Source of the DNA: Pavona decussata
Lineage: Eukaryota
DNA length: 64,000 nt
Direction: 5' to 3'
Assembly: GCA_977016875.1 (NCBI GenBank)
Contig: CDRNST010000054.1
Location: 1,612,001 to 1,676,000, forward strand
The notes under the pieces were generated by a model. It was not told the DNA's origin. It did not search any database and saw only the letters and a program-made list of their open reading frames with translations. Of this stretch, positions 17,055-62,872 are shown in pieces (within the stretch, counting starts at the first letter, position 1; the number at the start of each line of letters is the position of its first letter). The position numbers and the translations under genes were made by a program.

Positions 17055-17398
17055 GGGAGGAATGTCCAATTCCTATGGATGCCACTATCATAATTGACTC
17101 GTCTGGATGTGTAAGTCGCCGCAATTGGGTTCACTTGCTGAACTTTGTCCAAACTCTGGTCAGTGTCTTTAACGTGTCACCAGCTGGAGGTCGTATTGCC
17201 CTAATACAATACAGCACTGATGCCAATGTGGTTCTCAAATTCAACACATTAACTGGAAACCTTCTCAATGGTGCAGAGGTCACCAGGCAGATAGGTCGCC
17301 TACAGTGTCTGAGAGGTTCTAGACGAGCTGATAAAGGTTTGGAACTAGCTGACAAGGAAGTGCTGACTCCTGCAGCTGGCTTGAGAAATATCACCAGG
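17055..17398 (+). CDS. VWA4 N-half exon (DSSGC type)
   Basis: EECPIPMDATIIIDSSGC...LQCLRGSRRAD...; AGG|GTAAGA. Confidence 0.9.
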
Positions 17399-17575
17399 GT
17401 AAGAGCATTAACTGCTGTAAGAGATGTAACTCCTTGCTGAGATGGCTTCAAAACATTAACTATTAACCTTTAGTTCAAGATTTAAGTACCACATTTAAGC
17501 TATAGTGTTTCTGTTCTTTAGTGAAAGGCTGTAATTATCTTAGCAATATGCAGGATATTTTTGTCACATGAACCT

Positions 17576-17700
17576 AGTCTCCTATAGCTTAGTGGTAGAG
17601 CATCCGAACTAGTAATCAAAAGGTTTTAGGTTCGACTCCTTATAGAAGCACTCCGATTTTCTTTTTCCTATTATGCCTGCGTCACTCACTGAATAATACA
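17576..17700 (+). mobile_element. tRNA-derived SINE
   Basis: A-box TAGCTTAGTGG and B-box GGTTCGACTCC followed by a non-tRNA tail; degenerate antisense copy at ~27610-27680. Confidence 0.7.
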
Positions 17701-18125
17701 TTATTCTCAACAATTGTCTTTGCAAAAACGTTCTGGTTTAGTAATGTATCTTTGAAGTGAATAGCATTAAAGTGTCATCAAAACTATTAAATAGGGGTTG
17801 AAACAGGCAGAAAACACCAGTTGGTACTCGCATTGAAAATAGTACGGCAAAGCAATGACTTTGCTTTATCACCATATCACTTCCCCATATTGCTGTATTG
17901 AGGCAATGGTGGGAAAGTCATACTAAAATTCCCATGATGACATCACCGGAAGTGATTTTCGGAGGTCGAGCACGCAATCTGATTAGAATTGCGCTAAGCA
18001 ATTCTTTTAAACCGAGACTTAACATGCAACCGTATTCCATGTGAATTTATGATAAGGTTGAACATGGTGAAAATTGAATTTTTGACCAGTTTATTGTTGA
18101 TTTTTGTCCTGTTCTCACCCCGTAG

Positions 18126-18366
18126 CCTGTTCTTGTTATCATGACTGGAAAGCAAACGACAGACCAAGGAGTGTACACGCCTCTTGATGTGGCCTCTTCT
18201 CGCCTCAAGAGTAAAGGAGCACCAGTGTTTTCCTTGGGTATAGGAGAAGACGTGGACACTTCAGAACTTGCCAGAGTTGCTTCATCACCTGATAATGTGT
18301 TTACAGTGGACTCATATGAGGACCTAGACAGCAAAGTTAAGGACATGAAGAGAGGCCTCTGTATAG
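18126..18366 (+). CDS. VWA4 C-half exon
   Basis: cgtag|PVLVIMTG...VFSLGIG...RGLCI G|GTACA. Confidence 0.9.
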
Positions 18367-19000
18367 GTACATAGTTGATTTTCCTTTTCCTTCCCGAACA
18401 CCTGTTTCGTTAAATTAAATCCAAACAATGTTTTCTGTTCTAGTTTAAACTTTTACATCATCTGATTTTGGTTTAGTTTTTAATGGTCCACCTTCATTAG
18501 TATTAATTCTGGTTTTTGCTTTTCCTTCATGATTCTACATTAAAATTGATATCTTTAATTTTGACCTGTTTTTCCCAGTGTCTTAATTTTTTTATTTCCA
18601 TGTTGTTCTATAAGTAAATGGTCCCAAAATTTTGTCCAGTCTCTGGTTACATTGTATACAAATTTATGTTGTGTGATATTATTGAAATATTATTGAAAAA
18701 GATATTGTCTGGACCACATTGTGGTTAAAGTTGCATTTTCAACTCAGGCACGCATTATGACTCAACTTGTGCAAAAATGGCAAATATTTGTTCTTTGCGC
18801 CACATGTACTCTGTCTTCTGAATTGACTTTAACCCCCTCCTTCTTTAGGAAACATTTAAAATTTTGTTCGCCTGCACTAACGTGGTGGTTATCCTTTATG
18901 AATTGCAAATACTGCATCAGAGTCTGAATGAGTTCAGGGCCTTGATAATAATCTCTTAAGTCTTAGTACCATTTCCTTATGTAGAAAATTTCCTTCTCAG

Positions 19001-19084
19001 GAATACCGCTTGATACAACTGCATCACCTACACCAACTCCAGCTCCAACACCAACACCAACACCATCAGCCACATTAACAACAG
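19001..19084 (+). CDS. Pro/Thr-rich linker exon
   Basis: ttctcag|IPLDTTASPTPTPAPTPTPTPSATLTT G|GTAAAC. Confidence 0.85.
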
Positions 19085-19191
19085 GTAAACAATTGTACAG
19101 TAGTTGGCTTTGTTGCAACGCGCGATATGCTCAACAATTACCCTTACTCAGAATTTCTTAATATCGTTAACATGTCATATCAACATTACAG

Positions 19192-19401
19192 ATCCATGCA
19201 AGACTGTTGGCTGTAACGCCCCGTACAACATTGGCTGTACAGTTGTGGATGGTTCAGCTGAGTGCATATGTCCTTCATGCCCTGACACACTCAGTCCTGT
19301 GTGTACATCAGATGGTGTTCAGGATCGATCCGAGTGTTTCATGAAAAGGCAGTCTTGTCTGAGTGGTGACCTGGTGACAGTTGCAAAAGCTGGACCATGT
19401 G
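19192..19401 (+). CDS. Follistatin-like (FOLN + Kazal) domain 1
   Basis: 10 Cys: DPCKTVGC..GC..ECICPSC....PVCTSDG....SEC.....SC......GPC. Confidence 0.88.
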
Positions 19402-19589
19402 GTATGAGAACACATCATACCAGTAATAATTATTGTAGAAACTAAAATTGCTAAGTTTCACTCGAGGTGCAAGTCCCCCCCCCCCCCCCCCAAAAAAAAA
19501 AAAGCATAGAAAAAAAAACGTTCATGTAGGTTGACTAAAACGTTAGATGAAGCTATTGTAGGATTGTCTCTGCAAGAAAACATTTTAAG

Positions 19590-24364: not shown

Positions 24365-24699
24365 TCAAAGAGTGCAAGGCAGTCATTGACATAGCATTTG
24401 TGATTGATTCATCGGCAAGCATCGGAGTTAGCAGCTGGGATAGAAAGAAGAGATTCTTAAAAGCAATAGTCAGCAAGCTTGATGTTAGTGCCTCTGGTAC
24501 ACATGTAGCAGCTGTTGCCTATAGCACCAATGCTGAGGTTGTGCTGCTGTTCAGTAATGGCCAGAGTACAGATGAAGTCAATAAAGCTTTCGATGATATG
24601 CATTGGCAGGAAGGATTCACATTCACTGACAAAGGCTTGCTGCTTGCAGACAGAATATTGTTCGAAACTGCAAATGGCATGAGACCAGGTGTATCAAAG
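24365..24699 (+). CDS. VWA6 N-half exon (MIDAS DSSAS)
   Basis: Paralog of VWA5a; AAG|GTAAAC. Confidence 0.92.
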
Positions 24700-24840
24700 G
24701 TAAACGAACATGTAGTGTACTACAGACAAAATGATATGAGCTATAGTGTTCAATGAACCAATCACTACATACATCATGACCTTAGATGTTGCTAAGTGTA
24801 TTTTTTTTTCCTGGTGAGATTCCAAATTACAGCACCACTA

Positions 24841-25625
24841 CAGTGGAACCCGCTCTACGGACACCTGCTTAATACGGACACCCAGATATTATGGATAGTT
24901 TCGTTTGACCCATACTCATACTCATACTCATACATTTCCTCTTAAATTAACCTGCTTAATACGAACGCCGGTTAATACGGACAACGGACACTTTTTTGAC
25001 AAATTTTCATACATCGTCAACCCTACTTTGCGGACACTGGTTCCTGCGCACTGTCTGTTTTCCTTGTCACAATTGATCATGCCAAATGTAGACATTGTGC
25101 GTTGTTCAAATAACGACAGATTTCTTTGGGTTAATACGATTTTATTACTAAAATCAGTAGCTTAATAGCATGGCATATTTGATCAGTCTCTTTCTTATGG
25201 TGTTTGACCCTTGTACTATAGTCTTTAATAAAGTTTTCTGCCTGTTATGCCCTCACAACAGTTTCACTTCTTTGGTCTTTGCTGCAGTCATTGCTCGTTT
25301 CCTCCCTCCTCTTTGACAAGCCTTGCTTACCACTATCAACATCAGCCTCTCCTCGGAGACTGATGCTGACTTTGATTCCGTTGTCATGTTTCAAGAACAA
25401 TAACGTAATTCTTAGTCCGAGGATTTGATAAATGAGCGTAAGGTTTCTTTAGTTTAAACTTGTTACAGTTACAGTTAAGAATTAAACAACGTTTTGTTGC
25501 CGAAGAAATGTGTGCTTAAACCTTTGTATCGATAAATCATGTGTCTGTAACGATTTTTTCTGAGAGCCCGCTTAATACGGACACTTTCGCATGTCCCCTT
25601 GGTGTCTGTATTAACCGGTTTCTTT
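24841..25625. mobile_element. Tc1/mariner-pogo-type MITE (right TIR decayed)
   Basis: TA|CAGTGGAACCCGC.., repeated AATACGGACA motifs, right end GTCTGTATTAACCGGTTTC. Confidence 0.65.
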
Positions 25626-25951
25626 ATACTTTTAACTTAACCCATGAAATTCTCACTAACCCAATCAGATTTTGCAGAAGAGGAAAGGTAATTTCACCCT
25701 CATCCCTCTCTAAGCGTTGTATTTTATTAACAATTGACTGGTGCATACAATTGAGGTTGGGTTTCTTTTTTCCTATTCTGTAAGCTTCTTCTCTGGTGAA
25801 CAGGTGCCCCCAAAATTTCTGGTGCTTATTATTCAGATACCGATTTACCTATCCACATAGAGGTTTTCCCTGGAGAGATTCTCGTTGCTTGGTCTTATCT
25901 TTTATTTCATAAGTTCTTAGATGATTGATTCATTTACACTTTCTTGTGCAG

Positions 25952-26189
25952 GTTTTGATTCTTGTCACTGATGGAAAGCAAACTACTTCTATGCCTTACA
26001 CTGAATTAACAGTAGCATCTCAAGGAATAAAAGACAAAGGAGTTTCGGTTTATGCTGTCGGAGTGGGCAAAGAACCAGATCTATCAGAGCTCCAGCAAAT
26101 TGCCTCCACGCGAGAGAATGTCTTTTTATCTGAATCTTTCAAGAGAGTCATTGCTCTTGCCCCTCAAATACGAGGCAGACTATGTGACT
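25952..26189 (+). CDS. VWA6 C-half exon
   Basis: gtgcag|VLILVTDG...LCD T|GTAAGT. Confidence 0.92.
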
Positions 26190-26728
26190 GTAAGTCGTTT
26201 TTTCTTGGAAGTAATCCAGCTGTTAGTAATCAGTTGTCACAATTGTAGCTTCAAATGCAATTTTTTTTAGCTCAGGTCTGTAACGTGGTTGTATGGTCTT
26301 CATTTTGCGTATGAGCCTTCTAGATTTTCAGCGGCATCTGTCGGTACATATAGGGATTATAGGTTTCAGGGATGACAGTAATTTGAACCAAATGGCCACG
26401 TGTTTGTGCTTCACGCTGACGTGGGTAAACTGCCTTCTTGGTTTTTGTTCTTGTTTGTTTCCTCCGTTGATCCATGATATTAATGAAGGATAAGATCAGA
26501 TTGTAATTCAACGCAAAAAAGTGGGCTTTGGGTATAGCTGATGAACATCAGTTTGATTTAAAACCGTGATCTTCTGCTGAGAACGATTTGTAAATATATC
26601 ATCTTCTTAAAATATGAGCTGGAAAGTGCACATTGCAAGTTTATACATCAAAACAAGCTGTATAATAAATGTCAATAAGAATCAAAATGCATTAGGCTGA
26701 CTTGAAACAATTGCATTTTCTCCCTTAG

Positions 26729-29828: not shown

Positions 29829-30172
29829 AAGAAACATGCCCAATCCCTATGGACACCACCTTCATTATCGACGCATCTGTTTGTGATGATCCCGGAAACT
29901 GGAATCGTGTGCTGAAATTTGTTCAAACTTTAGTCACCTTTTACGATGTGTCACCATCTGTTGGACGTATTGCCTTGATCACATTCAGCACTGATGCCAC
30001 AGTTGACCTGAAGTTCAACACATTAACTGGAAATCTTCTGAATGGTGAAGAAGTCAACAGACGAGTTGGTCTCCTACAATGCCAGGGTGGTTCGAGGAGA
30101 ATTGACAAAGCATTAGATCTGGCAGGCAAGGAAGTGTTGACTCCGGCTGGTGGAATGAGAGGTGTATCAAGT
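29829..30172 (+). CDS. VWA8 N-half exon (unit 2)
   Basis: Same protein sequence and splice sites as VWA7a. Confidence 0.9.
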
Positions 30173-30286
30173 GTAAGCGAACTCTTAGCAAAAGTGTTAT
30201 AGGTTTGGAAGTCTGGAAGTAGGTGATGATGGTTTCGTTTGTATTACATTGATCAGTTTAATTTGTTTTCTTTTCGTGTTTTGTAG

Positions 30287-30530
30287 CCTGTTTTTGTGAT
30301 CACAACTGGAAAGCAGTCGAAAGACCAAGGAACTCCTACGCCTCTTGATGTAGCCTCTTCTCGCCTCCAGAGTAAAGGAGCAGCCGTGTTCGTGTTGGGT
30401 ATAGGAGAAGACGTTGACCCATCAGAACTCAACCGAATTGCTTCTGCTCCTAAGAACGTTTTTAGAGTGGATTCGTTTGCTGATTTGGATGAGAAATCGA
30501 ACGAATATAAGAGAGGCATCTGTATACTAG
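30287..30530 (+). CDS. VWA8 C-half exon
   Basis: Paralog of VWA7b (Q>R). Confidence 0.9.
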
Positions 30531-31168
30531 GTATTGTTTGGGAACGTGGTGTGCTTGTTTTTGTTACTTCGTGTTTATATTATTCGTTGAGCATTATACT
30601 CTGAGGGTAAATGGGCCGGAGTGAATGTCCAGAGACTTAACCTTCCTGATGCGTGGACAATATTGACCCTGTTATATGTACGGCATTCATTTTCGAGCTG
30701 TTCTTTACTTTATATGATGGAAATTTGTTTCCATTTACTGCAATATATTATTGACTCGTTGTGAGTTGGACAACAACCTATTTGTGTGGCCGTTCATCAA
30801 TATTACGTTTTACGATTACCTTTAGTTATCAGATTGCTAAGTTGACAAATGAATACAGAATCACTTGGTCTTAATGTTAGCAAAACTGCGAGGTTTCTTT
30901 GAGATCTGATTTAACTTTTGGGAAAGGTATAGCTGCTCTTAGAATGAAATGTATGGTCCCAGTGCAGTGCTGCATGTATTTCGCAATCCTGCTATTTTTT
31001 CTTTTACGTTTCCTCTATTTGAAACAGATCTCTTTTTAATATCACACTTTTTTTTCTGTTTTCCTCACAGCAAATTTACTTTTGAACTACATTTTGAACT
31101 TAATCTTGTGTCTAGAAACGTTTTGTCTACCAAGGATTGCGCTAACTATTATTTTTCATCTTTGTCAG

Positions 31169-31609: not shown

Positions 31610-31953
31610 AAGAAACATGCCCAATCCCTATGGACACCACCTTCATTATTGACGCATCTGTTTGTGATGATCCCGGAAACTGGAATCGTGTGCTGAAATT
31701 TGTTCAAACTTTAGTCACCTTTTACGATGTGTCACCATCTGTTGGACGCATTGCCTTGATCACATTCAGCACTGATGCCACAGTGGACCTGAAGTTCAAC
31801 ACATTAACTGGAAACCTTCTGAATGGTGAAGAAGTCAACAGACGCGTTGGTCTCCTACAATGCCAGGGTGGTTCAAGGAGAATTGACAAAGCATTAGATC
31901 TGGCAGGCAAGGAAGTGTTGACTCCGGCTGGTGGAATGAGAGGTGTATCAAGT
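31610..31953 (+). CDS. VWA9 N-half exon (unit 3)
   Basis: Paralog of VWA7a. Confidence 0.9.
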
Positions 31954-32067
31954 GTAAGCGACCTCTTAGCAAAAGTGTTATAGGTTTGGAAGTCTGGAAG
32001 TAGGTGATGATGATTTTGTTCGTATTACATTGATCAGTTTAATTTGTTTTCTTTTCGTGTTTTGTAG

Positions 32068-32311
32068 CCTGTTTTTGTGATCACAACTGGAAAGCAGTCG
32101 AAAGACCAAGGAACTCCTACGCCTCTTGATGTAGCCTCTTCTCGCCTCCAGAGTAAAGGAGCAGCCGTGTTCGTGTTGGGTATAGGAGAAGACGTTGACC
32201 CATCAGAACTCAACCAAATTGCTTCTGCTCCTAAGAACGTTTTTAGAGTGGATTCGTTTGGTGATTTGGATGAGAAATCGAACGAATATAAGAGAGGCAT
32301 CTGTATACTAG
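32068..32311 (+). CDS. VWA9 C-half exon
   Basis: Paralog of VWA7b (A>G). Confidence 0.9.
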
Positions 32312-32944
32312 GTATTGTTTGGGAACGTGGTGTGTTTGTTTTTGTTATTTGGTGTTTATATTATTCGTAGTGGATTATCCTTGGAGGGTAAATGGCCCGG
32401 AGTGAATTTCCAGAAAGCTAACCTTCCTGATTCATGGACAATATTGACCTTTTTATATGCACGGCATTCATTTTCAAGCTGTTCTGTAGTTTATATGATG
32501 CACATTTGTTCCCATAAACTGCAATATAAAATTGACTCGATATGAGTTGGACAGCAATTCATTTGTGTGTCCATTCATCAACATAACGTTTTACGATTAC
32601 TTTTAGTTATCAGATTGCTAAGTTGTCAATTGAGTACAGAATCACTTGGTCTTAATGTTAGCAAAACTGCGAGGTTTCTTTGAGATCTGATTTAACTTTT
32701 GGGAAAGGTATAGCTGCTCTTAAAATGAAATGTAGGCTTCCAGTGCAGTGTTATCTCGCAATCCTGCCATTTTTGCTTGTACGTTTCCTCGTATTTGAAG
32801 CAGATCTCTTCATAATATCACACTTTTTTTTCTGTTTTCCTCACAGCAAATCTACTTTTGAACTACATTTTGAACTTAATCTTGTGTCTAGAAAAGTTTT
32901 GTCTACCAAAGATTGCGCTAACTATTATTTTTCATCTTTGTCAG

Positions 32945-33385: not shown

Positions 33386-33729
33386 AAGAAACATGCCCAA
33401 TCCCTATGGACACCACCTTCATTATCGACGCATCTGTTTGTGATGATCCCGGAAACTGGAATCGTGTGCTGAAATTTGTTCAAACTTTAGTCACCTTTTA
33501 CGATGTGTCACCATCTGTTGGACGTATTGCCTTGATCACATTCAGCACTGATGCCACAGTGGACCTGAAATTCAACACATTAACTGGAAACCTTCTGAAT
33601 GGTGAAGAAGTCAACAGACGAGTTGGTCTCCTACAATGCCAGGGTGGTTCGAGGAGAATTGACAAAGCATTAGATCTGGCAGGCAAGGAAGTGTTGACTC
33701 CGGCTGGTGGAATGAGAGGTGTATCAAGT
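33386..33729 (+). CDS. VWA10 N-half exon (unit 4)
   Basis: Paralog of VWA7a. Confidence 0.9.
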
Positions 33730-33843
33730 GTAAGCGAACTCTTAGCAAAAGTGTTATAGGTTTGGAAGTCTGGAAGTAGGTGATGATGATTTTGTTTGTA
33801 TTACATTGATCAGTTTAATTTGTTTTCTTTTCGTGTTTTGTAG

Positions 33844-34087
33844 CCTGTTTTTGTGATCACAACTGGAAAGCAGTCGAAAGACCAAGGAACTCCTTCGCCT
33901 CTTGATGTAGCCTCTTCTCGCCTCCAGAGTAAAGGAGCAGCCGTGTTCGTGTTGGGTATAGGAGAAGACGTTGACCCATCAGAACTCAACCAAATTGCTT
34001 CTGCTCCTAAGAACGTTTTTAGAGTGGATTCGTTTGGTGATTTGGATGAGAAATCGAACGAATATAAGAGAGGCATCTGTATACTAG
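33844..34087 (+). CDS. VWA10 C-half exon
   Basis: Paralog of VWA7b. Confidence 0.9.
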
Positions 34088-34719
34088 GTATTGTTTGGGA
34101 ACGTGGTGTGTTTGTTTTTGTTATTTGGTGTTTATATTATTCGTAGTGGATTATCCTTGGAGGGTAAATGGCCCGGAGTGAATTTCCAGAAAGCTAACCT
34201 TCCTGATTCATGGACAATATTGACCTTTTTATATGCACGGCATTCATTTTCAAGCTGTTCTTTAGTTTATATGATGCACATTTGTTCCCATAAACTGCAA
34301 TATAAAATTGACTCGATATGAGTTGGACAGCAATTCATTTGTGTGTCCATTCATCAACATAACGTTTTACGATTACTTTTAGTTATCAGATTGCTAAGTT
34401 GTTAATTGAGTACAGAATCACTTGGTCTTAATGTTAGCAAAACTGCGAGGTTTCTTTGAGATCTGATTTAACTTTTGGGAAAGGTATAGCTGCTCTTAAA
34501 ATGAAATGTAGGCTTCCAGTGCAGTGTTATCTCGCAATCCTGCCATTTTTGCTTGTACGTTTCCTCGTATTTGAAGCAGATCTCTTCATAATATCACACT
34601 TTTTTTCTGTTTTCCTCACAGCAAATCTACTTTTGAACTACATTTTGAACTTAATCTTGTGTCTAGAAAAGTTTTGTCTACCAAAGATTGCGCTAACTAT
34701 TATTTTTCATCTTTGTCAG

Positions 34720-35166: not shown

Positions 35167-35510
35167 AAGAAACATGCCCAATCCCTATGGACACCACCTT
35201 CATTATCGACGCATCTGTTTGTGATGATCCCGGAAACTGGAATCGTGTGCTGAAATTTGTTCAAACTTTAGTCACCTTTTACGATGTGTCACCATCTGTT
35301 GGACGTATTGCCTTGATCACATTCAGCACTGATGCCACAGTGGACCTGAAATTCAACACATTAACTGGAAACCTTCTGAATGGTGAAGAAGTCAACAGAC
35401 GAGTTGGTCTCCTACAATGCCAGGGTGGTTCGAGGAGAATTGACAAAGCATTAGATCTGGCAGGCAAGGAAGTGTTGACTCCGGCTGGTGGAATGAGAGG
35501 TGTATCAAGT
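35167..35510 (+). CDS. VWA11 N-half exon (unit 5)
   Basis: Paralog of VWA7a. Confidence 0.9.
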
Positions 35511-35624
35511 GTAAGCGAACTCTTAGCAAAAGTGTTATAGGTTTGGAAGTCTGGAAGTAGGTGATGATGATTTTGTTTGTATTACATTGATCAGTTTAAT
35601 TTGTTTTCTTTTCGTGTTTTGTAG

Positions 35625-35868
35625 CCTGTTTTTGTGATCACAACTGGAAAGCAGTCGAAAGACCAAGGAACTCTTACGCCTCTTGATGTAGCCTCTTCTC
35701 GCCTCCAGAGTAAAGGAGCAGCCGTGTTCGTGTTGGGTATAGGAGAAGACGTTGACCCATCAGAACTCAACCAAATTGCTTCTTCTCCTAAGAACGTTTT
35801 TAGAGTGAATTCGTTTGGTGATTTGGATGAGAAATCGAACGAATATAAGAGAGGCATCTGTATACTAG
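35625..35868 (+). CDS. VWA11 C-half exon
   Basis: Paralog of VWA7b. Confidence 0.9.
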
Positions 35869-36491
35869 GTATTGTTTGGGAATGTGGTTGGTTTACTTTT
35901 GTTACTCTGTGTTTATATCATATATTGAGCATTATCCATGGAGGATAATTTGGCCACGGTGAATATTCAAAGACCTATAACCCTCAACAGCCATGGAGAG
36001 TTTACCTTTTTATATATAGGTATTCTCTTTTTAGCTGTTGTTTGACTTACGTGATGGGCATTAGTTTGTACTTTCTGGATATGGGAAATTTAGTTTTTAT
36101 TTGTTTTGACTTGGATAATTACTCACTTGTCTGTTCATTTGTAAATAGCATATTTTACGGTTACTTTTAAGTGTGAGTTTCAAGTTGAAAAGAGAGTACG
36201 GAATGTGTTATTCTTTACATAGTTGGCAAAAGTTTGAGTTTTCTTTGAGATCGGATTTAAATTTCAGGAAATATAAAAAAATGAAGAGTATAGCTTCAGT
36301 GTTATCCTGCATTCCTCACATATCTTTGCTTCTACCTTTATTCTCAAATTTGAAGCAAATCTCGTCTAAAAATCACTTTTTTCTGTTTTTGTCAATTCAA
36401 TTCAACTGGTAAATTTTGTTTTCCAGTTAATCTTGTGTCCAGTAATATTTTGCGTACCGAGAACTGCCCTTACTATTTTCTTCTTTGTCAG

Positions 36492-36926: not shown

Positions 36927-37270
36927 AAGAAACATGTCCAATACCCATGGACACAACCTTCATTATTGATGCATCTGTTTGTGACGATCCTGGAAACTGG
37001 AATCGCGTGCTGAAGTTTGTTCAAACTTTAGTCACCTTTTTCGATGTGTCACCATCTGTTGGGCGCATTGCCTTAATCCCATTCGGCACTGATGCCACAG
37101 TGGTGCTCAAGTTCAACACATTAACTGGAAACCTTCTGAATGGTGAAGAAGTCAATAGGCGAGTTGGTCTCCTACGATGCCAGGGTGGTTCAAGGCGAAT
37201 TGACAAAGCATTAGATCTGGCAGACAAGGAAGTGTTAACTTCTGCTGGTGGAATGAGAGGTGTATCAAGG
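36927..37270 (+). CDS. VWA12 N-half exon (unit 6)
   Basis: EETCPIPMDTTFIIDASVC...GVSR|GTAAAT. Confidence 0.9.
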
Positions 37271-40030: not shown

Positions 40031-40214
40031 TATAGTATTCTGAAACTATGCCATGTGCACATACAGATTTGCGCACATACCTAGAGATTATGGTTTCCTT
40101 ACGGAGTCCGCAACCATTACACACCAGCTTTTTTCAAAATAGAAATCGGAAGATCGTATTTTCTTGCATTATAGCTTCTTAGTTTTGTATTTTTCGTTTT
40201 GTTTTTTGTTACAG

Positions 40215-42492: not shown

Positions 42493-42509
42493 AAAATGAA
42501 AAAATAAAT

Positions 42510-45474: not shown

Positions 45475-46267
45475 GTAAGTGAGCTTGTTTTTATTTTTGT
45501 CTTCAATTAATTTTAGCTTGAAATGTTCAGAAGACACATAGATCTACACCGGGAACTTTTGGGGCTATCTAAATGTTGAATATGACATGGATCCTGGTGG
45601 CTTCAAAATTAAACCAAAGTACAGGAAGATGAGTGCGTTTTGCATCATCCGATCCCTCCTACTGAAAGTTCTGAATGTCATAAATATGAAATGATTGGGA
45701 AGCCATTCCTTTAGATAATTCATCTTGTTTCAGCTCTGCTCGTTCGATAATCAGGCAAATCATGTGCATGTAAGGTTTGACTGAATTTCCCTTGCGGTGT
45801 ATAGGTAAACTGTAGTGCATGTTTTTGGTCTTTTTGTTCGCTTGACATGTCCATGTCGTTCTAAGGAACATAAGGCTGAGTTGTAGACACGCTTGCCATT
45901 TCTTCTAGATATTGCTTAAAGGTTGAAGCAAAGACCCAACAATGTAAATCTTGTCATGGACCTGTTTGACTGTTATCTATTTTCTGTGACCCGGGTTTCT
46001 GTCTGTCGGTGTGTTTTTGCTTTTACTGTAAAAATACCAACCCGTCATGGCTAAGATAGAGATTTAAACATGGTGACAGCACAGTTAAAATTATGCAAGT
46101 TAAACTTAGTAATCAGAGCAAACAAAGACTTGACCGTGGTAACCAGAGGTAATTGGGTTCTAAATTGTGATATATGTCAGAGATAAGCAACCTGATGGTA
46201 GATTCATACTGTTCGTGGTTCTGACACATGCTTGTATTTTACTAGCCATTGTCTCGTTTTTGTGCAG

Positions 46268-46608
46268 CCTGTAAGGCTACGGTAGATTTGGCATTCATTG
46301 TGGATTCGTCAGGAAGTATTGGTCGTAGAAGATGGCCGCAGATGTTAAATTTCGTGAAAGGCGTCATTAACAAATTCAATGTTGGACCAGATGGCACTCG
46401 TGTAGCTGTGATTGCCTACAGTACGAGTCCGAAAGTTGAATTCACCTTTAATACCCTGTCTGGTGCAGACATTACAGAAGAGGAGTATGGAAAACTCATT
46501 GATCGCATACGTCTTCAGAGAGGCTTTACTTACATTGACAAAGCTCTGAAAATGGCTGATGAGCAATTGTTTATTACAAGTGCTGGAATGAGGCCTGCAG
46601 TTCCAAAG
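46268..46608 (+). CDS. VWA13 N-half exon (MIDAS DSSGS)
   Basis: gtgcag|CKATVDLAFIVDSSGS...GFTYIDKAL...; AAG|GTATGA. Confidence 0.9.
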
Positions 46609-47720
46609 GTATGAAATAAGAATACTTGTTTTTTTCTTTTAACCCAGAGGCTGCGAGTTTTGATGTAAAGAATAAATTCATCACGTTTAGTGACAGAGTA
46701 AATGTTAGTTGTTTTGTTTCCAAGTTGTGCACAATTTTTAAGAGTTGACTGTGACACTGACATTTAACAAAACAACCTTATTCGTCCATGGTCTACATTA
46801 TTTCAGTAGACGGTAGGAGAGGCCCCTATCAAATACACGAATATGGTTTTGTGTGTTTGCTGATTTGCTGGTTTGATTTCCTGACCGTAACATGGATATA
46901 TTTTCCAATTACGATCATTTCGTTGCCTACCATCCCACCACTGATCAACACTTTCTCTTAGCTATAGTCAACTTGGTTTTCTTTTGTTGGGTATTCAGTT
47001 TTACAGTCCTAGAAAACTCGACTTCTTGAAGTCTCAAGTGGCTGGGCAGCTTTACTGTAACGCTTAAGACTTCGTATGGAATCTTTAGTGTTGTCTGTGA
47101 GAGTTTCAGTTGTTTTTTTATTCTCTTTGGTATTAAGACTGGAAAAGATTTTCAAACATTGGACAGTTTCTAAGAAATCTTGCATGACCGAATGAAAAAA
47201 TCTAACTAGGCGTAAATATAATAGTCAACCTCTGCAATGATATTTTTCTTTTACATGTACACTGTGAAGCTTTCAAATTTGCTGCAAAATCCTAATTTCA
47301 ATGTTCAAAAGTTCAAAAGCTGGATTTTTGTAAACTGTGCTGAGACTGCCAAGTTACTATTCAAAGCTGGTGCTAATTAGATTTCACGCATTTTAGGGCA
47401 AGGATTTAGTGTCAGAACAAACCTTCCACGGATTGCAACCACGAAACTCGAAGAATTGAAACAATTTCTTCCTTTTTGCGTAATCAGTAACTGTTGTTAC
47501 CTCTTGAACATGGGTTGATTGCCTTGATTTCCTGCAAATGCCTCATTCTGAAGAACAAATACTGCATTAGTACATTACAGATTATTTTCTATTTAGTTGC
47601 TAACGCTTATTGGCCATGACCAAGAGACCATCACCACCCGAGAGTCCGTAATAATTTTCGTTATCTCTATAGCAACGAACCAATAAAGTTTTGTCTTTGT
47701 TTGACCGTCTTCTAAAACAG

Positions 47721-47958
47721 GTTGCAATTGTGATAACTGATGGCGAACAGACAGAAAAAGGAGGTTTTACGCCATTGGATGTGGCATCTCAAGGCCTCAA
47801 AGACAAGGGAGTGGCAGTGTACTCTTTGGGTATTGGTGGGCATGTACGTGTTGAGCAGTTGCGGCAAATGGCAAGTTCTGATGACTACGTATTTAATGCT
47901 GCTGGATTTGATGAGCTTGGGGAGGTCATCGTTCCGATTGTGGAAAAGTCTTGTCCAA
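47721..47958 (+). CDS. VWA13 C-half exon
   Basis: aaacag|VAIVITDG...KSCP A|GTAAGG. Confidence 0.9.
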
Positions 47959-48952
47959 GTAAGGGAAGCTAATTGGTTACTGGTACAGAATGAACTGTAA
48001 CAGTGTTGGGATCTGTACCCCATTTGTGAAAACGTTTTGAGGCTGGATACTAATTTTCAGAACTTTTTCCTGTAGAGTTTGGGTTGTATTCCGTTGTGCT
48101 GTTTTCAATGTTTGATAACAATGGTCAATATTCAATTGCATATGTTGCCTGTGTCATCACGCACATCTGCCAGATTGCGTCATCATCATTTCAGTATATC
48201 ACATTTGTGCAACCTTAAAGTTCTTCGTAATAGTAACACGTTTGGCAGAAATATGACAAGTTGAAATAGAAAAATAAATTGTGTTGTAGTAACCAAGAGG
48301 AATTTTTCCATTAACACTAACAAATGCATATTGAGAGTATTAGGTTGAGAGGCATTCCACAGTAAAACGTGCTGAGTTCGATTCTCAGTACTTGGCAGTC
48401 TTTTTTTTCGTGTGCTGTTAAGACAAATCATTATTTAATAGCGTTTTAAAATGGGAATAATAGTATAACGGTGAAAATAAGACTTTTCGTATATCTCTAA
48501 CAGCCTTGTATTAGATCTCTAGATGTTTCATAAAAATAACGGCAACAATTTCCCTTCAAACAATCCACCTCATCAACTACAAGAAGCCAAACCATTCTTA
48601 TACAATTCAGTTAAGGCCTCTTCATGTGTTAGCGCTTCACTTCCAATCTGGAACCTCTAGTTCTTAATTCTTTTGTATTACTTGTGTGGATTAGCCAGGT
48701 CTATTTTGAAGAATTTTTATTTCATAGTTTTGCTACCTAAATGCTGTCTTCAGTATCGTCTTTATAAAATAATTAATGCCTTGAATTTAAGAAAATAAAG
48801 GAGAGAACTTTTTAAAAAAAACTGAAGATACATACATATATTAAAAAATGTGTACAATTGTATTACAAGATAGCTAGGTAGGAATCCGATTGATAGAAGT
48901 TGACATCTTAATTAGTAAGAAACTAAGTAAATACTGTTATCGTCTAATTCAG

Positions 48953-49090: not shown

Positions 49091-49887
49091 GTAAGTGAGC
49101 TTGTTTTTATTTTTATCTTCAATTAATTTTAGCTTGAAATGTTCAGAAGGCACATAGATCTACACCGGGGAACTTTTGGGGCTGTCTAAATGTTGACTAT
49201 GACATGGATCCTGGTGGCTTCAAAATTAAACCAAAGTACAGGGAGATGAGTGCGTTTTGCACCGTCCAATCCCTCCTACTGAAAGTTCTGAATGTTATAA
49301 ATATGAAATGATTGGGACGCAATTCATCTTGTTTCAGCTCTGCTTGTTCGATAATCAGTCAAATCATGTGCATGTAAGGCTTGACTAAGTATCCCATGCG
49401 GTGTATAGGTAAATTGTAGTGCATGTTTTTGGTCTTGTTGTTTGCTTGACATGTCCATGTTGTTCTAAGGAACATAGGGCTGCGTTATAGACAGGCTTGC
49501 CATTCCTTCTGGATGTTGCTTAAAGGTTGAAGCAAAGACCCAACAATTTAAATCTTTTGATGGACCTGTTTGACTGTTATATTATCTATTTTCTGTGGCC
49601 CGGGTTTCTGTCTGTTGGTGTGTTTTTGCCCTAGATTTTACTGTAACAATACCATCCTGACATGGCTAAGATAGAGATTTAAACATGTTGACAGCACAGT
49701 TAAAATTAGGCATGTTAAACTTAGTAATCAGAGCAAACAAAGACTTGACCTTGGTAACCAGAGGTAATTGGGTTCTAAATTCTGATATATGTCGTAGAGA
49801 TAAGCAACCTGATGGTAGATTCATACTGTTTGTGTTTCTGACACATGCTTGTGTTTTACCATCCATTGTCTCGTTGTTTTTGTGCAG

Positions 49888-50228
49888 CCTGTAAGGCTAC
49901 GATAGATTTGGCATTCATTGTGGATTCGTCAGGAAGTATTGCTCGTAGAAGATGGCCACAGCTGTTAAATTTCGTGAAAGGCGTCATTAGTAAATTCAAT
50001 GTTGGACCAGATGGCACTCGTGTAGCTGTGATTGCCTACAGTACAGGTCCAAAAGTTGAGTTCACCTTCAATACCCTGTCTGGTGCAGACGTTACAGAAG
50101 AGGAGTATGGAAAACTCATCGATCGCATACGTCTTCAGAGAGGCTTTACTTACATTGACAAAGCTCTGAAAATGGCTGATAAGCAATTGTTTATTACAAG
50201 TGCTGGAATGAGGCCTGCAGTTTCAAAG
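49888..50228 (+). CDS. VWA14 N-half exon
   Basis: Paralog of VWA13a. Confidence 0.9.
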
Positions 50229-50244
50229 GTATGAAATAAGAATA

Positions 50245-50834
50245 CAGTAGAACCCCGGTTAGTCGAACTTACCGCTAACTCAAACTAAGTCCTGTTTCCT
50301 TCGGATTTGACCCTACTTTTCAGTCACTTTTACTCGGATAACTCGAACTAAATTTTGTTTCCCTTGATCGAAATTTACCCCTATAACTCGAATTCTGGTT
50401 CTTGCAACTCACCACTGATGTCATCCCATTAGCTCGGAGCTCCTGTCATGTTATCGGTAAAAAACACTGGAATTGACAAATCTAAAGCAATTTCATTTTA
50501 GTTGGTGCAACAGATCGTGTATTTGATAGTCATTTCCGATCTTTTTAGTCAAACCACAAGCACTGCCTGTTAAGCTGTCACATAGAAAACAAAAAGTTCG
50601 TAGTACAAGTTTATAATGTCCTTATCTCAAGGCGTTCTAATTCTTTCTTTAAAATGTTGACAAAGTTTTTTTGACCCAGTACTGAAGTGTATACTGAAGT
50701 GCTGATAATCAATAAACTATAAATTATTTACATGAAAAGTCGAATTTTCGATCTTCCCCGGCAACGCGAACCCCAACTAACTCGAACAGTATTTTTTGTC
50801 TCCCTTCAGAGTTTGAGTTACTGGGGTTCTACTA
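50245..50834. mobile_element. Tc1/mariner-pogo-type MITE
   Basis: TA|CAGTAGAACCCC ... GGGGTTCTACTA|TA; TAACTCGAA repeats; empty paralogous site at ~46624. Confidence 0.9.
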
Positions 50835-51477
50835 TAGTTTTTTTTTAACCCAGACGCTTCGAGTTTTGAACAAAAGAATAATTTCATCACGTTTAGTGAC
50901 AGAGTAAATGTTAGTTGTTTTGTTTCCAAGGTTTGCACAATTTTTAAGAGTTGGCTGTGACACTATTATTTCAGTAGATGGGTGAAAAGGCCCCTGACAA
51001 ATACACGAATATGGTTTACCACTGTGTGTTTGCTGATTTGCTGGTTTGATTTTCCGATGGTAACGTGGACATTTTTTCCAATTACGATCATTTCGTTGCC
51101 TACCATCCCACCACCGATCAGCACTTTCTCTTAGCTATAGTCAACTGTTTTTTTTTTGTTTGGTATCCAGTTTTACACTCCTAGAAAACTTGCCTTCTTG
51201 TCTTTTTCTTGACTTGACTTCTTCTTTCTTTTTTGCGCAATCAATAATTGTTGTTACCTTTTGAAAATGGGTTGATTGTCTTGATTTCCTGCAAATGCCT
51301 CATTCTGAAGAACAAGCGCTGCATTAGTGTGTACAGATAATTTACTATTTATTTTCTAACGCTTATTGGCCTTGACCAAGAGACCATCACCACCCGAGAG
51401 TCCGATAATAATTTTCGTTATCTCTATAGCAACAAACCAAGAGTGTTTTGTCTTTGTTTGACCCTCTTCTAAAACAG

Positions 51478-51715
51478 GTTGCAATTGTGATAACTGATGG
51501 CGAACAGACAGAAAAAGGGGGTTTTACTCCATTGGATGTGGCATCTCAAGGCCTCAAAGACAAGGGAGTGGCAGTGTACTCCTTGGGTATTGGTAGGCGT
51601 GCACGTGTTGAGCAGCTGCAGCAAATGGCAAGTTCTGATGACTACGTGTTTAATGCTGCTGGATTTGATGAGCTTGGGGAGGTCATTGTTCCGATTGTGA
51701 AAAAGTCTTGTCCAA
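51478..51715 (+). CDS. VWA14 C-half exon
   Basis: Paralog of VWA13b. Confidence 0.9.
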
Positions 51716-53435
51716 GTAAGGGAAGCTAATTGGTTACTGGTACAGAATGAACTGTAACAGTGTTGGGATCTGTACCCGTTTGCGAAAACGTTTTGAGGCT
51801 GGATACTAGTTTTCGGAACTTTTCCGGCAGAGTTTGGGTTGTATTCCGTTTTCTGCTGTTTTCAATGTTTGATAGCAAGGGTCAATATTCAATTGCACAT
51901 GTTGCCTGTGTCACGCACATCTGCCAGATTGCAGCATCATCATTTCATCATTTCAGTATTTCACATTTGTGCAACCTTAAAGTGCTATGTGTTTATGCAG
52001 TAAGCAAGAATTTGTTGTAAACATGTGCAGTAAACTGATTAGCTGTGCGTGTGGCAAATAAAATTAAATAAACTCAGTCGTAAAATTAAAATGCAATGTT
52101 GTGCCTGTGTAGCAAGCTACATTAAATAAAGCTAAGCCTGTTTTTTTTGCTAGCGACACAAGCAAAGCGCCAGCATGGGCGAAAGCACGAGATTCAAACT
52201 TTCTCATTTTCTTGTGCTTTCGTCTGTGCTTGCTTGTGTTGCGTTCCTTTTCACTTGGCATAAAGCTCTTATGGTTGTGCTTGTGCCTGTGCTTGCATCG
52301 CTAGTGAAAACCAGGTTTTAAAGTGCACGTACGTCTTGTGGCAATGCTGTTTGCCGAGTAGTCATTTAGTACTATTGGCCTCTCTGTCCTTGCCTCTGTT
52401 TGCATTTTAGTTTTTTTTTCTTTCTTAGCTTTGCTTGCTGGCTCGTTCTTGCATTGCATGTGGCGCAGATGCTTTTCCCAACTTATGTCGCAATTTTGTT
52501 TATCCCAATGACTCCCAAGGGACCCTCTGTAATCGCTTAGAAGCTGTGACCTGCTAAATTTTTCAATTGTTAAATCCAGGGGTGGGGTGGGGGGCTCTAA
52601 CATTCTATTCCTAATGTGTGAACGGAAAAATTCTATTTGCGCTATGGGGTATGTCTCGAGTACCCTCTTGGCCCTATTCATCCTAGGGGGAGAGGACACA
52701 AAGTGCCCGTGCTGACTTTCAGCATTCATACCTTTATTTTTAAAATGGTGAGTCACAAAACCCACCAATCCTTGTGAGTTTGCCTAAAATTTACTTAAAC
52801 AACCTGCTGCAAGTATCGCACGCATATTCGATCTTCCCTGAGTGGGTCCCCTCCCTCGCGCTATACGCGACAAGAATGTATTTTGATTGGCCTGCTTTTG
52901 TTGAAGGCAATTAGAACAATACATCCCTACTAGGAGAGGGGAGAGCTTAATGAATAAATTGATGTGCAGATTTGAAGCTACCGCGAAAAAAAGATACGGA
53001 GCCCGTTTTTAGACACGGTATGCCCCTCAGGGCATCCCCCGTAAATATGCGATTCCAAGAGTAACTGAGAGTCACTAATTTGCATAAGTTAGACAAAGAC
53101 CTTAGCGCAAATTGAGTCTGATTGCACATTTAAACACGGTCGTAATTGTTTAAAGAGTAACATCTCAGTAATGAGACAATCAAACTTGTTCTGGCGTTTT
53201 TTCAACACGTAAAAGAATTGTGAAGGTCATCTCTCAGTTAATCTTGAAGTCGCATATTTAATTTTAGTTTCCCTTGACAATGATGCCAAGATGTCGCCGA
53301 AACGTAGGACTTTTCTATCGTTAGTTTTTGCCTGTATATGTGCAACAAGATATTTTCATGAACAATTATTCTAAAAATTGTATAGTGGGATGTGTGTGAG
53401 GTGCTGGTGACCCGCTCTCGACTTTTCCAAAGTTT

Positions 53436-56059: not shown

Positions 56060-56402
56060 ATGAAACATGCCCGATCCCTATGAACACAACCTTCATTGTT
56101 GATGCATCTGTTTGTGATGACCCTGGAAACTGGAATCGTGTGCTGAAGTTTGTTCAAACTTAAGTCACCTTTTACGATGTGTCACCATCTTTTGGACGCA
56201 TTGCCTTGGTCACATTCAGCACTGATGCCAAAGTGGACCTGAAGTTCAACACATTAACTGGAAATCTTCTGAATGGTGAAGAAGTCAACAGACGAGTTGG
56301 TCTCCTTCAATGCCAGGGTGATTCAAGGCGAATTGACAAAGCATTAGATCTGGCAGACAAGGAAGTGTTTCTCAGGCTGGTGGAATGAGAGGTGTATCAA
56401 GG
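56060..56402 (+). pseudogene. VWA15 N-half pseudo-exon
   Basis: Homologous to VWA7a but has TTA>TAA stop at 56161-56163 and a 1-nt deletion near 56370 (343 vs 344 nt); splice sites intact. Confidence 0.85.
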
Positions 56403-56533
56403 GTAAGACGATAACATGTCGTGGTATTATGTCAGTGTGATTGATCAACAGAAGAAACCGCATGATTATGGGTAGAAACTATGTTCAAGTAAGTTTACTA
56501 TTCACCAATTTTATTGTCCTTTTTGCTTTGTAG

Positions 56534-56777
56534 CCTGTATTTGTAATCACAACTGGAAAGCAAACAATAGACAAAGGACCATACACTCCTCTTGATGAGG
56601 CCTCGTCTCGCCTCCAGAATAAAGGATCAGCCGTGTTTGTGTTGGGTATAGGAGAAGACGCTGATCCTTCCGAACTGCAGCAGATTGCTTCTGGGCCCAA
56701 AAATGTGTTTAAAGTGGATTCATTTGAGGACTTGGATGTCAAATCTAATGAATATAATAGAGGCATTTGCTATCTAG
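56534..56777 (+). CDS. VWA15 C-half exon (open frame, partner exon dead)
   Basis: ttgtag|PVFVITTG...RGICYL G|GTATT; 244 nt like its paralogs. Confidence 0.65.
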
Positions 56778-57009
56778 GTATTTTACGCTCGGCCGCCCTT
56801 TGCTCGTTTTCTTTCTTTCTTTCTTTCTTTTTTATTTTGTCTGCTGAACAAAATTTGAGGAATTATGTTATTAAAACAAATTGTAACGTTACACAAAAAA
56901 GGCAATGCGAAGAATTGCATTTTCTAAACAAGACAACACTCCTGGCCTTTATTCTCACAATTAGCATTAATTAAATTCATGCATCTAGTATCTATTCATG
57001 GTGTTCCAA

Positions 57010-60017: not shown

Positions 60018-60456
60018 GTTTCAGTATTATCATAATTTTCTACCTAAGGCCTTTGACAACTTCTCACGCAAATCATCTTAACATAATTGGTTCACTCACT
60101 AACTGATACTTTTTTCTTTTTTCTTTTTTCTTTTTTCTATCTTAAATATTATTATTATTATTATTATTTTCATTTTCTTGTCTACTTGTTGGATTTTTTT
60201 TTCTTGTGTGTTATAACCCAGATAAATTATTATTCCGGCAAAATGTTGCCCCTGTTAACACTTTCGCTGTTCTCATTGACTGGCTTTTATAACCTTTGTT
60301 ATCATCACTGCATTTGTAAGCTTGAGCTACTTTTTTTTCTGTTTATGTTTCCGTGACCCTTGCACACGGTTTCCCGAGGGCTTTGTCGTACTTTGATCGG
60401 GATATTTGATCGTCTTTTACCATAGATAATGTTGTTCAACGTAATTTTGTTTTCAG

Positions 60457-60504
60457 TTCCAGCAACCCCAGCCCCAACAACAACACCAGTGCCAACAACG
60501 CCAG
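60457..60504 (+). CDS. Pro/Thr-rich linker exon
   Basis: tttcag|PATPAPTTTPVPTTP G|GTAAC. Confidence 0.82.
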
Positions 60505-60701
60505 GTAACTAACGTTCACGTTTTTGTGAAGCTCTCATTTTGAGATAGTATCGGCATCCTGTTTCGATTAATTGGATCTTATAAATTTCGAATCCCGTTG
60601 AGTATATAAAGCCAGGCTTGCATGGAACAAAGTAGTCTATAGAATTTGTTATTTTCGTGTATCAAATAGTAACGTTTTGGACATATTTTCTTTACCAACA
60701 G

Positions 60702-61045
60702 AAGAAGTATGCCCGATCCCTATGGATACTACTTTTGTTATCGACTCATCTGTCTGTGATGATTCCAACAACTGGAATCGTGTGCTGAAGTTTGTTCAAA
60801 CTTTGGTCACGTATTTCGATGTGTCACCTTCTGTTGGACGCATTGCCTTAATCCCATTCGGCACTGATGCCACAGTAGTACTCAAGTTCAACACACTAAC
60901 TGGAAACCTTCTAAATGGTGAAGAAGTCAACAGACGAGTTGGTCTCCTGCAGTGCCAGGGTGGTTCAAGGCGAATTGACAAAGCATTAGATCTGGCAGAC
61001 CAGGAAGTGTTAACTTCTGCTGGTGGAATGAGAGGTGTATCAAGG
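60702..61045 (+). CDS. VWA16 N-half exon (DSSVC type)
   Basis: aacag|EEVCPIPMDTTFVIDSSVC...GVSR|GTAAGG. Confidence 0.9.
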
Positions 61046-62297
61046 GTAAGGGAATTCTGATTGAATTTCTATTTTTTTTTTCAAAGACATCACTTCTTAG
61101 TCAGTCTAATTATCTTGAAAAGCGAAGTTTTTTATTCTTTTTAGTTTTATAACTGAACCTGACTCGAACCTGCTTGTCATTAAAGGCTCACATTCACCGA
61201 AAAGGCCTTGCGCGCATATGTTATTGCGATCTGATTGGTTAGATTAAAGAATCCACCCTATTTCTCTCCAGTCTGTCCGATTTATTTGAATTTGTTTGTG
61301 GCTACAAAAAATATTTACTCTCCAAAATGATGGAATTGTCTGTAGCTCTTTATGTAAAAACCTCACCAATAGAAAGTTGATGATTTGGTCCGCATTTCTG
61401 ACCGCCACTCAGCCGGGGATGCGGCGGAGCTCTCTCGAGAGCACTCGACAGTGTATAAAGGAAAGAAGATAGGCCTGCGTGACTCCCACTTGCGTGTTTT
61501 AGCCATGTTCAGTTATAGTCCTAGTCATTATAGAAGTTGACAAGAAGAGAAATTGTATGGGGTGGTTGCTTATTATCACTTTCCCAAATAGCGCTGATAA
61601 CGTTTATTGCATATTATGGTTTATCATGACACTGATATTTCTACCTTTCATAGTATACAAGTGATATGATATTCTTAATTTGCGTGTTTATGAATCTGGG
61701 GCTAACTAGGTAAATGAATATTTTAATTCAACTGCATTTGACCATAAAAACAAACCAAGGCAACCTTCCTGAGAAACCATATAGACGGTTTGTTAAATAT
61801 CTGTTGGGCACTCTATTTACATGCATCAGGCGAATCCTGAATCACTTCGAACTGATCAAACTTACTTGCCAAGGTGAGATATCCATTTAAATCAGAAATA
61901 TCAGTACAAAAGATGCATGCTGCGAGGCGTCAAGCTTCCTGTTTCTTGCCTTTAAAATACAAGCTACGCGAAGAGTCTCTTGACAAGGATAAACTTCGGG
62001 TAAACTAAACAACATTGTCAAGTGCGCGATGTCACGTAGCAGCGACCGACGAAGTATTGAAGAGGAAAAAGTCACATTTTGCCAATACAGTTTCAAAATA
62101 ATTCAAGGCAACAATAACGTGAAATGGAAGAATAAAATTTCTACAAGCATATGAACTTATCATCCTCAAGGTGGCTCCAGAGCAAATGAGTTTTAAACGA
62201 TAACCCGATTGGGGACATCTTCGTGTTAAAGGAACTTCAAACACAACGCCTGCGGTGCGCAAAGCCTTTTAGCAATGAATTCTCTAATTTTCTGAAT

Positions 62298-62549
62298 CGT
62301 GATCGTGGTCTCTCCTTTCGTTTCGAAAGTAAGTGTTCAGCAGTCAGTCTGTGGTTGTGTTACTAGGTCTGTGGCGTTTCTTGTGTGAGGCGAAATCAAT
62401 CTTGGATTTGCATGCACGGCCACATATGGTGCACATGTGTGCAAGAGAAGATGGAGGCAGAGAGGCGGTTGCCTTTCGTCGAGCACGTCTTTCCTGTAGT
62501 TCCGCAACTCTGATTTCCTTTAATGTGTGGACAGCCTTGTGACAACTGG
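62298..62549 (-). mobile_element. 5'-truncated non-LTR retrotransposon 3' end (RTE-like)
   Basis: C-terminal Zn finger CTICGRACKSKIDFASHKKRH, short UTR ending in a CACGAT repeat, 8-bp flanking direct repeat TTCTGAAT (62290-62297, 62550-62557). Confidence 0.75.
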
Positions 62550-62628
62550 TTCTGAATAATGAATTGATCAACATGGTTCTATTAAAATGACTCAATTTTG
62601 ATTTCTTATTCTCATTTTTCTTTTTTAG

Positions 62629-62872
62629 CCTGTTTTGGTAATTACAACAGGAAGGCAAACAACAGGCCAGGGAGCCTACACGCCCCTTGATGAGGCGTCC
62701 ACTCGCCTCCAGAGTAAAGGATCAGCCGTGTTCGTGTTGGGTATAGGAAATGACGTTGACCCCTCAGAACTGAACCAAATTGCTGCTGGACCTAAAAATG
62801 TGTTTACAGTGGACTCGTTTGAGGACTTGGAAGAAAAAGCAAATGAAATCAAGAAAGGCATCTGTGTACTAG
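62629..62872 (+). CDS. VWA16 C-half exon
   Basis: ttttag|PVLVITTG...KGICVL G|GTAATT. Confidence 0.9.

Follow-up and report, generated by a model that had tools for sequence, protein, structure and literature searches.

The stretch of Pavona decussata DNA analyzed here (assembly GCA_977016875.1, contig CDRNST010000054.1, positions 1,612,001 to 1,676,000 of the forward strand), hereafter the window, spans 64,000 nt with a G+C content of 38–42% and is without long open reading frames (ORFs). It contains a single multi-exon gene on the plus strand, in which tblastn searches with two exon peptides, combined with in-frame translation, recover 16 VWA domains. Every one of these domains is coded by two exons: exon A, of about 114 codons, encodes the N-terminal Cys together with the loops that bear DxSxS and the Thr, whereas exon B, of about 76–80 codons, encodes the C-terminal Cys and strand beta4. 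Each of the exons tested surpasses the Pfam VWA (PF00092) cut-off of 23.8 bits (e.g., 49.1 for exon A and 38.8 for exon B of VWA7, and 57.3 for exon A of VWA4). Nine of the domains, namely VWA4, VWA7–12, VWA15 and VWA16 (Table 1), carry two extra cysteines and appear to constitute a coral-specific subfamily of VWA domains in which the MIDAS (metal ion-dependent adhesion site) is dead; it is the probable pairing of these cysteines that concerns us here.

Transcription and splicing of the gene agree with the model, since RNA contigs from a run of the same organism (X1) cross the predicted junctions: in one of them exon A of VWA4 is spliced straight to exon B with 3 mismatches, and in another the Kazal exon is followed by exon A and then exon B of VWA5. 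A relative of about 94% identity is also present in RNA runs labeled "coral metagenome". For VWA7, the splice signals are evident in the DNA itself, and the exon phases that follow from them are 1/0/1.

In the numbering of exon A used below, C3 belongs to the terminal Cys pair, C18 occupies the second-Ser column of DxSxS, position 89 is that of the MIDAS Thr, and C84 lies five residues upstream of it (T-5). The first-pass annotation of this DNA had described DxSxC in place of DxSxS in the nine domains, together with the loss of the beta4 Asp, and in-frame translation returns the motifs exactly as claimed, with ITTG, IMTG or ITSA (Thr or Ser for Asp) standing against the usual [IV]TDG. It also reproduces the description of VWA5, 6, 13 and 14 as domains that keep DxSxS, the Thr and the Asp and are without either Cys; they read DSS[GA]S, Thr and [IV]TDG, and the site of the second Cys is taken by Trp or Leu. 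All three sequence features of the MIDAS fail in the nine: DxSxS has become DSSGC, DASVC or DSSVC, the Thr has become Arg, and the Asp of TDG has become Thr or Ser. The second extra Cys, which had been assigned to the loop supplying the Thr, is likewise present in all nine, with the qualification that it sits five residues upstream of the Thr and not at a metal ligand; there it occupies the usually aromatic "Y" of the Y.GG.T signature. The terminal Cys pair (C-P-I-P ... G-I/L-C) is present and separate, as had been stated, giving four Cys per domain. With the terminal pair thus accounted for, the two extra cysteines are left to pair with each other.

That the subfamily with the extra cysteines is the one being amplified, a further element of the annotation, is borne out by VWA7–11, which form five tandem units of 1.76–1.79 kb that are 82–97% identical in DNA including their introns, with 99–100% identity in exon A and identical motifs. 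The two-exon VWA units have a symmetrical outer phase (1-1), which permits in-frame tandem duplication. Within the subfamily, VWA7–12, 15 and 16 are 86–100% identical to each other and VWA4 stands at 63%, and trees unite all nine in one clade. The perfect co-variation of the two cysteines reported for the window is hence true as a description, but it amounts to a single event and proves little alone; as evidence for pairing it was rejected, the nine domains forming one young clade.

Table 1. VWA domains and other exons of the gene in the window, with the domains carrying the extra cysteines and their intact relatives first
Feature	Coordinates	Strand	Motifs (loop 1 / Thr loop / beta4)	Codons of the extra cysteines	Remarks
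VWA4, Cys-pair type	exon A 17054-17397, exon B 18125-18364	+	DSSGC / LQCLRGSRRAD / IMTG at 18132	17108-17110, 17306-17308 (T-5)	Arg at Thr position; Pfam VWA E=3e-15
VWA5, intact MIDAS	exon A 20066-20399, exon B 22044-22283	+	DSSGS / Trp at T-5, Thr / ITDG		
VWA6, intact MIDAS	24370..26248	+	DSSAS / Trp at T-5, Thr / VTDG		
VWA7, Cys-pair type	exon A 28044-28387, exon B 28502-28747	+	DASVC / LQCQGGSRRID / ITTG at 28508	28097-28099 (Cys18), 28295-28297 (Cys84)	AG 28042-28043; donor GTAAGC at 28388; acceptor AG before 28502
VWA8, Cys-pair type	29829..30535	+	DASVC / LQCQGGSRRID / ITTG	29882-29884, 30080-30082	exon A 100% identical to VWA7
VWA9, Cys-pair type	31610..32316	+	DASVC / LQCQGGSRRID / ITTG	31663-31665, 31861-31863	exon A 99% identical to VWA7
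VWA10, Cys-pair type	33386..34092	+	DASVC / LQCQGGSRRID / ITTG	33439-33441, 33637-33639	
VWA11, Cys-pair type	35167..35873	+	DASVC / LQCQGGSRRID / ITTG	35220-35222, 35418-35420	
VWA12, Cys-pair type	36927..40457	+	DASVC / LRCQGGSRRID / ITSA at 40221	36980-36982, 37178-37180	long intron between exons A and B
VWA13, intact MIDAS	46264..47969	+	DSSGS / Leu at T-5, Thr / ITDG		Pfam VWA E=2.8e-26
VWA14, intact MIDAS	49884..51726	+	DSSGS / Leu at T-5, Thr / ITDG		
VWA15, Cys-pair type	56062..56782	+	DASVC / LQCQGDSRRID / ITTG	56113-56115, 56311-56313	defective exon A (56062-56370): in-frame stop 56161-56163, last ~12 codons missing; exon B (56534-56782) open
VWA16, Cys-pair type	60704..62877	+	DSSVC / LQCQGGSRRID / ITTG at 62635	60755-60757, 60953-60955	
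VWA1-3, degenerate MIDAS	1033..6700	+			no extra Cys, no terminal Cys pair; by translation and motif reading
Three thyroglobulin type-1 exons	10880, 12432, 13757	+			Pfam Thyroglobulin_1 3.7e-14
WAP exon	~16143-16295	+			Pfam WAP 4.8e-8
Kazal exon	~19194-19406	+			Pfam Kazal_2 5.5e-7; joined to VWA5 by spliced contig

It is outside this gene that the co-variation gains weight. The homologues available at the level of the exon are single-exon genomic ORFs (exon A with read-through into the intron) from unannotated assemblies, with the order of domains readable only for three loci (L001, L003 and L004). Among the 183 that could be scored in other coral assemblies, 153 have both cysteines, 30 have neither and none has a single one. 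Similarly, a word-indexed search of other large eukaryotic assemblies recovered 120 exon-level ORFs at 69–100% identity, and both cysteines are found in 113 of the 113 complete ones. A HMMER scan with exon A against 1.84 billion representatives gave 703 matches; the best 150 of these 703 proteins contain 798 VWA N-halves, with Cys at the second-Ser column in 9, at T-5 in 16 and at both in 7, and the two N-halves that have the former seemingly without the latter are truncated fragments. One protein (P0099, 724 aa, with domains at 28–139, 229–341 and 512–623) combines an intact DxSxS and Thr with a CxC or CxxC in the Thr loop starting from the T-5 column. A 265-aa ORF in L001, considered as a potential intronless domain, was ruled out, as it consists of exon B plus intron.

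Alignment of 122 distinct sequences of the clade (median identity 75%, down to 56% pairwise) shows Cys3, Asp14, Trp24, Arg89 and Asp92 to be invariant, with Arg90 conserved at 98% and Asp14 and Ser16 at 99–100%. The nearest relatives that lack the pair, at 50–62% identity, carry Ser or Asn in column 18 and Trp in column 84; Cys-free relatives also possess the terminal Cys pair, and some of them are already MIDAS-dead, e.g., those of the P0021 type (GSSGS...W...N) and P0039 (DSSGN...W...R). Arg in place of the Thr ("G.RR[IL]D") is, moreover, widespread among MIDAS-dead VWA domains from giant cnidarian-type proteins (P0002, 3534 aa; 78 of 718 VWA halves from the HMMER scan). Asp14 is kept in 95% of these 78 Arg-type halves, and the second-Ser column is free to vary once the Thr is lost, with Ser persisting in 12 of them; a substitution of Arg for the metal is a possible reading of such domains.

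A second group of VWA domains with paired extra cysteines came to light in another coral (L003, positions 1–12465), where the modules run as thyroglobulin type-1 (TY), VWA (no Cys, Trp), Kazal, VWA (full MIDAS), VWA (GSSGTAC, with Cys at T-5) and Kazal. A search with the third of these VWA domains brought up about 20 further clusters, each with the shifted loop-1 Cys together with Cys at T-5. In these sister lineages, the loop-1 Cys lies two positions later, either at column 20 in a loop of the same length (GSSGTGC) or at column 19/20 in one with a one-residue insertion (GSSGTAC/GSSxxAC), and Asp14 is replaced by Gly; five Cys-free sisters have Gly at the loop-1 site and Trp in column 84. In L003, the two MIDAS-dead types, the sister Cys-pair type included, retain the beta4 Asp (VITDG). 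A three-way link between the Cys pair and the loss of this Asp was accordingly rejected: as the sister lineages with the pair retain VITDG, the loss is not tied to the pair and is a feature of the Cys-pair clade of this genome only.

Trees built after removal of the trait columns retain about 105 columns and are poorly resolved. Their best topology requires three joint state changes, a single origin is not rejected (approximately unbiased test, p=0.12), the DxSxC clade has one origin, and no branch carries one Cys alone. The informative point in this history is that the loop-1 partner has shifted between columns 18 and 20, in whichever direction, with Cys84 remaining fixed and no single-Cys lineage emerging.

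The proximity of the two loops was approached through both a fold model and coevolution. An AlphaFold2 model of exon A of VWA7 alone, i.e., the N-half of the domain, based on an alignment of 148 rows, has a mean predicted local distance difference test (pLDDT) score of 92.9, the averages over residues 11–20 and 81–90 being 95 and 96, respectively. Its secondary structure according to DSSP comprises strands at 7–14, 45–52 and 56–60 and helices at 21–38, 72–80 and 91–102. In Foldseek comparisons it matches the N-halves of the integrin alpha1 I domain and collagen VI alpha3 N5 with a probability of 1.00 and a root-mean-square deviation of 1.6–1.7 Å, and together the model and these matches show the Rossmann-like alpha/beta order beta1-alpha1-beta2-beta3-alpha2/3. 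Mean-field direct coupling analysis (DCA) was run on 706 VWA N-halves without Cys at either column (effective number of sequences, Meff, 549; 5778 pairs). As a positive control, the pair 18–89, formed by two MIDAS ligands, comes up at rank 2, and the sheet contacts 12–50 and 51–59 are recovered. Column 84 couples best with columns 23 (rank 32), 20 (rank 42) and 17 (rank 89), and the pair 15–85 stands at rank 16. These couplings support the premise of the first-pass annotation that the two loops are neighbors on the MIDAS face, and those of columns 84 and 85 indicate that the T-5 residue packs on the beta1-alpha1 loop and the beginning of alpha1, the region in which the partner Cys is found in both its variants; column 20, the site of the shifted partner, is itself a predicted contact of column 84. 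In most VWA domains column 84 is occupied by Tyr, His, Phe, Leu or Trp, and this suggests a buried site.

The most economical account of these patterns is that the extra cysteines form a second intradomain disulfide, between the Cys of the beta1-alpha1 loop and Cys84, in place of a buried Trp, because there are four Cys per domain, the extra two occur as both or none, the partner shifts but is never lost, coevolution places the sites close to each other, and column 84 looks buried. We consider such a bond moderately probable. Several observations weigh against it: distant VWA domains tolerate a Cys that stands alone at column 84 (P0017, with one Cys per domain, and P0067, with three); the direct coupling of columns 18 and 84, ranked 681 of 5778 in the Cys-free set, is weak, as expected for column 18, tied as it is to the metal; the independent evolutionary events are few (one to three), and a sign test on only one or two independent pairs cannot reach significance; and Cys at both positions was not found among the 20 sequence matches to solved VWA structures in the PDB. 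The lone cysteines of P0017 and P0067 and the possibility of as few as one origin can also be read as favoring reduced, unbonded thiols, with the changes of Ser to Cys and Trp to Cys being tolerated after the death of the MIDAS and inherited together, and the variability of the second-Ser column upon loss of the Thr fits such a history as well. It is rendered unlikely by the retention of both cysteines in all of the approximately 150 sequences, down to 56% pairwise identity in the clade, and by a partner Cys that moves without ever being lost; unpaired thiols are, furthermore, unusual in secreted domains.

Disulfides between domains or molecules offer another alternative, in which the two cysteines would cross-link the tandem VWA array or polymerize the protein in the manner of von Willebrand factor (VWF) or mucins. 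The tandem amplification of the domains and the extracellular, matrix-like character of the predicted protein would suit this, but one exposed Cys would suffice for such a role, yet none of the 183 homologues has just one; the mostly aromatic and probably buried column 84 and its coevolution with loop 1 of the same domain further render it improbable. A site for a soft metal (Zn, Cd or Cu) or a redox switch on the former MIDAS face, formed by the pair with Asp14 and Ser16, would draw on the location of the cysteines on the metal-binding face and on the near-complete retention of these two residues, and a zinc-occupied MIDAS is known from the mussel protein PTMP1, going by the title of the PDB entry 4cn9. 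However, the invariant Arg89 and the nearly invariant Arg90, at and next to the Thr position, should repel cations, conservation of Asp14 and Ser16 is general among MIDAS-dead VWA domains, and in the sister lineages the replacement of Asp14 by Gly and the two-residue shift of the Cys would not preserve the coordination geometry, leaving this option very improbable.

If the intradomain disulfide indeed exists, it would tie Cys84, located in the loop that precedes the helix from which the MIDAS Thr normally comes, to its partner on the beta1-alpha1 loop. In the scenario that we envisage, the metal site would have been dead or dying first in the lineage, with the Thr replaced by Arg or Asn; the Cys pair would then have replaced the packing of the Trp with a covalent tie between two loops of the MIDAS face; and the domain so produced would be fixed in conformation, independent of metal and suited to an oxidizing extracellular matrix. 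We infer the bond itself, the burial of Cys84 and the rigidifying role, and likewise a salt bridge between Arg89 and Asp14 in place of the metal. The proposal of the first-pass annotation that a disulfide locks the face in a metal-independent state is hence retained in part, i.e., for the obligate pair and the neighboring loops, and given up where the disulfide was to stand in for the metal site. The formulation that it replaces the MIDAS is overstated, for Cys-free relatives are already MIDAS-dead and the second Cys takes the place of a Trp and not of the Thr; as sister lineages with the pair also keep the beta4 Asp, the bond would not be a simple replacement for the metal. A more dynamic variant, wherein the pair is a labile disulfide of the allosteric type on the former ligand face that, opened by redox or thiol exchange, cross-links the VWA array into a covalent network of the coral's matrix, or else gates a new, metal-free binding surface around the invariant Arg89, Arg90 and the Asp residues, is quite unlikely.

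Beyond the VWA domains, the gene includes TY, WAP and Kazal exons between VWA3 and VWA5 (overall span 10880..19406), and its product is predicted to be a giant secreted multidomain protein (TY/WAP/Kazal/VWA/EGF) of an extracellular matrix-like kind. The local order of modules is kept in other coral assemblies (L003, L004 and L001). In L001 (5600–13200), the positional counterpart of VWA16 is the last Cys-pair VWA and is followed by three EGF_CA exons, and the gene therefore probably runs past the end of the window. On the minus strand, intronic ORFs at 57604–59549 and 43926–44554 give weak matches to Phage_integrase and DUF3504 along with a QRICH1-domain match, and look like remains of Crypton-type tyrosine-recombinase elements. 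Three further intronic stretches (17452–17819, 19476–19659 and 21132–21499) have thousands-fold coverage by RNA contigs, many of which have loose ends bearing tRNA-like (box B-type) letters; these stretches are probably copies of a tRNA-derived short interspersed element (SINE).

The fold of the nine domains is that common to MIDAS-type VWA and integrin I domains, with the exon-A model superimposing at 1.6–1.9 Å on 1qc5, 1ck4 and 1aox (integrin alpha1/alpha2) and with sequence matches to CMG2 (anthrax toxin receptor 2) and integrin alpha1. VWA5, 6, 13 and 14 are of this type, whereas the nine differ from it by Cys for the second Ser, Arg for the Thr and Thr or Ser for the beta4 Asp, plus the extra Cys pair. 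The nine resemble VWA domains that are naturally MIDAS-less, among which are A1 and A3 of VWF and, in the matrix, N5 and N2 of collagen VI alpha3, which is the best sequence match in the PDB and is also among the top fold matches (4igi and 4ihk). By virtue of their VWA fold, degenerate metal site and tandem extracellular array, the nine domains belong with the MIDAS-less matrix class (PMC3919171). The terminal Cys pair is common to many VWA domains and mostly absent from the N domains of collagen VI alpha3 (PMC3919171). Unlike the nine coral domains, those of collagen VI and the VWF A domains (A1 and A3) lack Cys both in the beta1-alpha1 loop and at T-5, and contact details for the positions of columns 18 and 84 were not found in the collagen VI N5 paper (PMC3919171).

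The concept of a covalent conformational tie has its counterpart in the engineered disulfide-locked VWF A domains found among the fold matches (the A1 mutant 4c2b and A2 N1493C in 3ppv). The bond proposed here would differ from these in being natural and in joining two MIDAS loops of the N-half. The engineered disulfides of I and VWF A domains are man-made, and the known ones lie elsewhere, in the region of the C-terminal helix or at the termini. Another likeness, with no homology of the pair claimed, is to the Cys-rich vWA domain of PilY1, a bacterial surface protein, for which it is proposed that the extra cysteines matter for mechanics (PMC8806160). Full-text literature searches found no description of DxSxC VWA domains, nor "MIDAS-less" as a term.

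VWA and I domains serve as a textbook example of adhesion that depends on metal and involves a conformational switch. The disulfide of the Cys pair is a prediction made at the level of sequence; should it be true, it would show how such a domain can be converted to a fixed, metal-free module, by means of a natural tie between two MIDAS loops of the N-half that substitutes for a buried Trp, the Thr being replaced by Arg. In that case, it could also guide the engineering of metal-independent or conformation-locked I domains. The Cys-pair VWA also marks a part of a giant coral matrix or protease-inhibitor-like gene that is specific to the lineage and actively amplifying.

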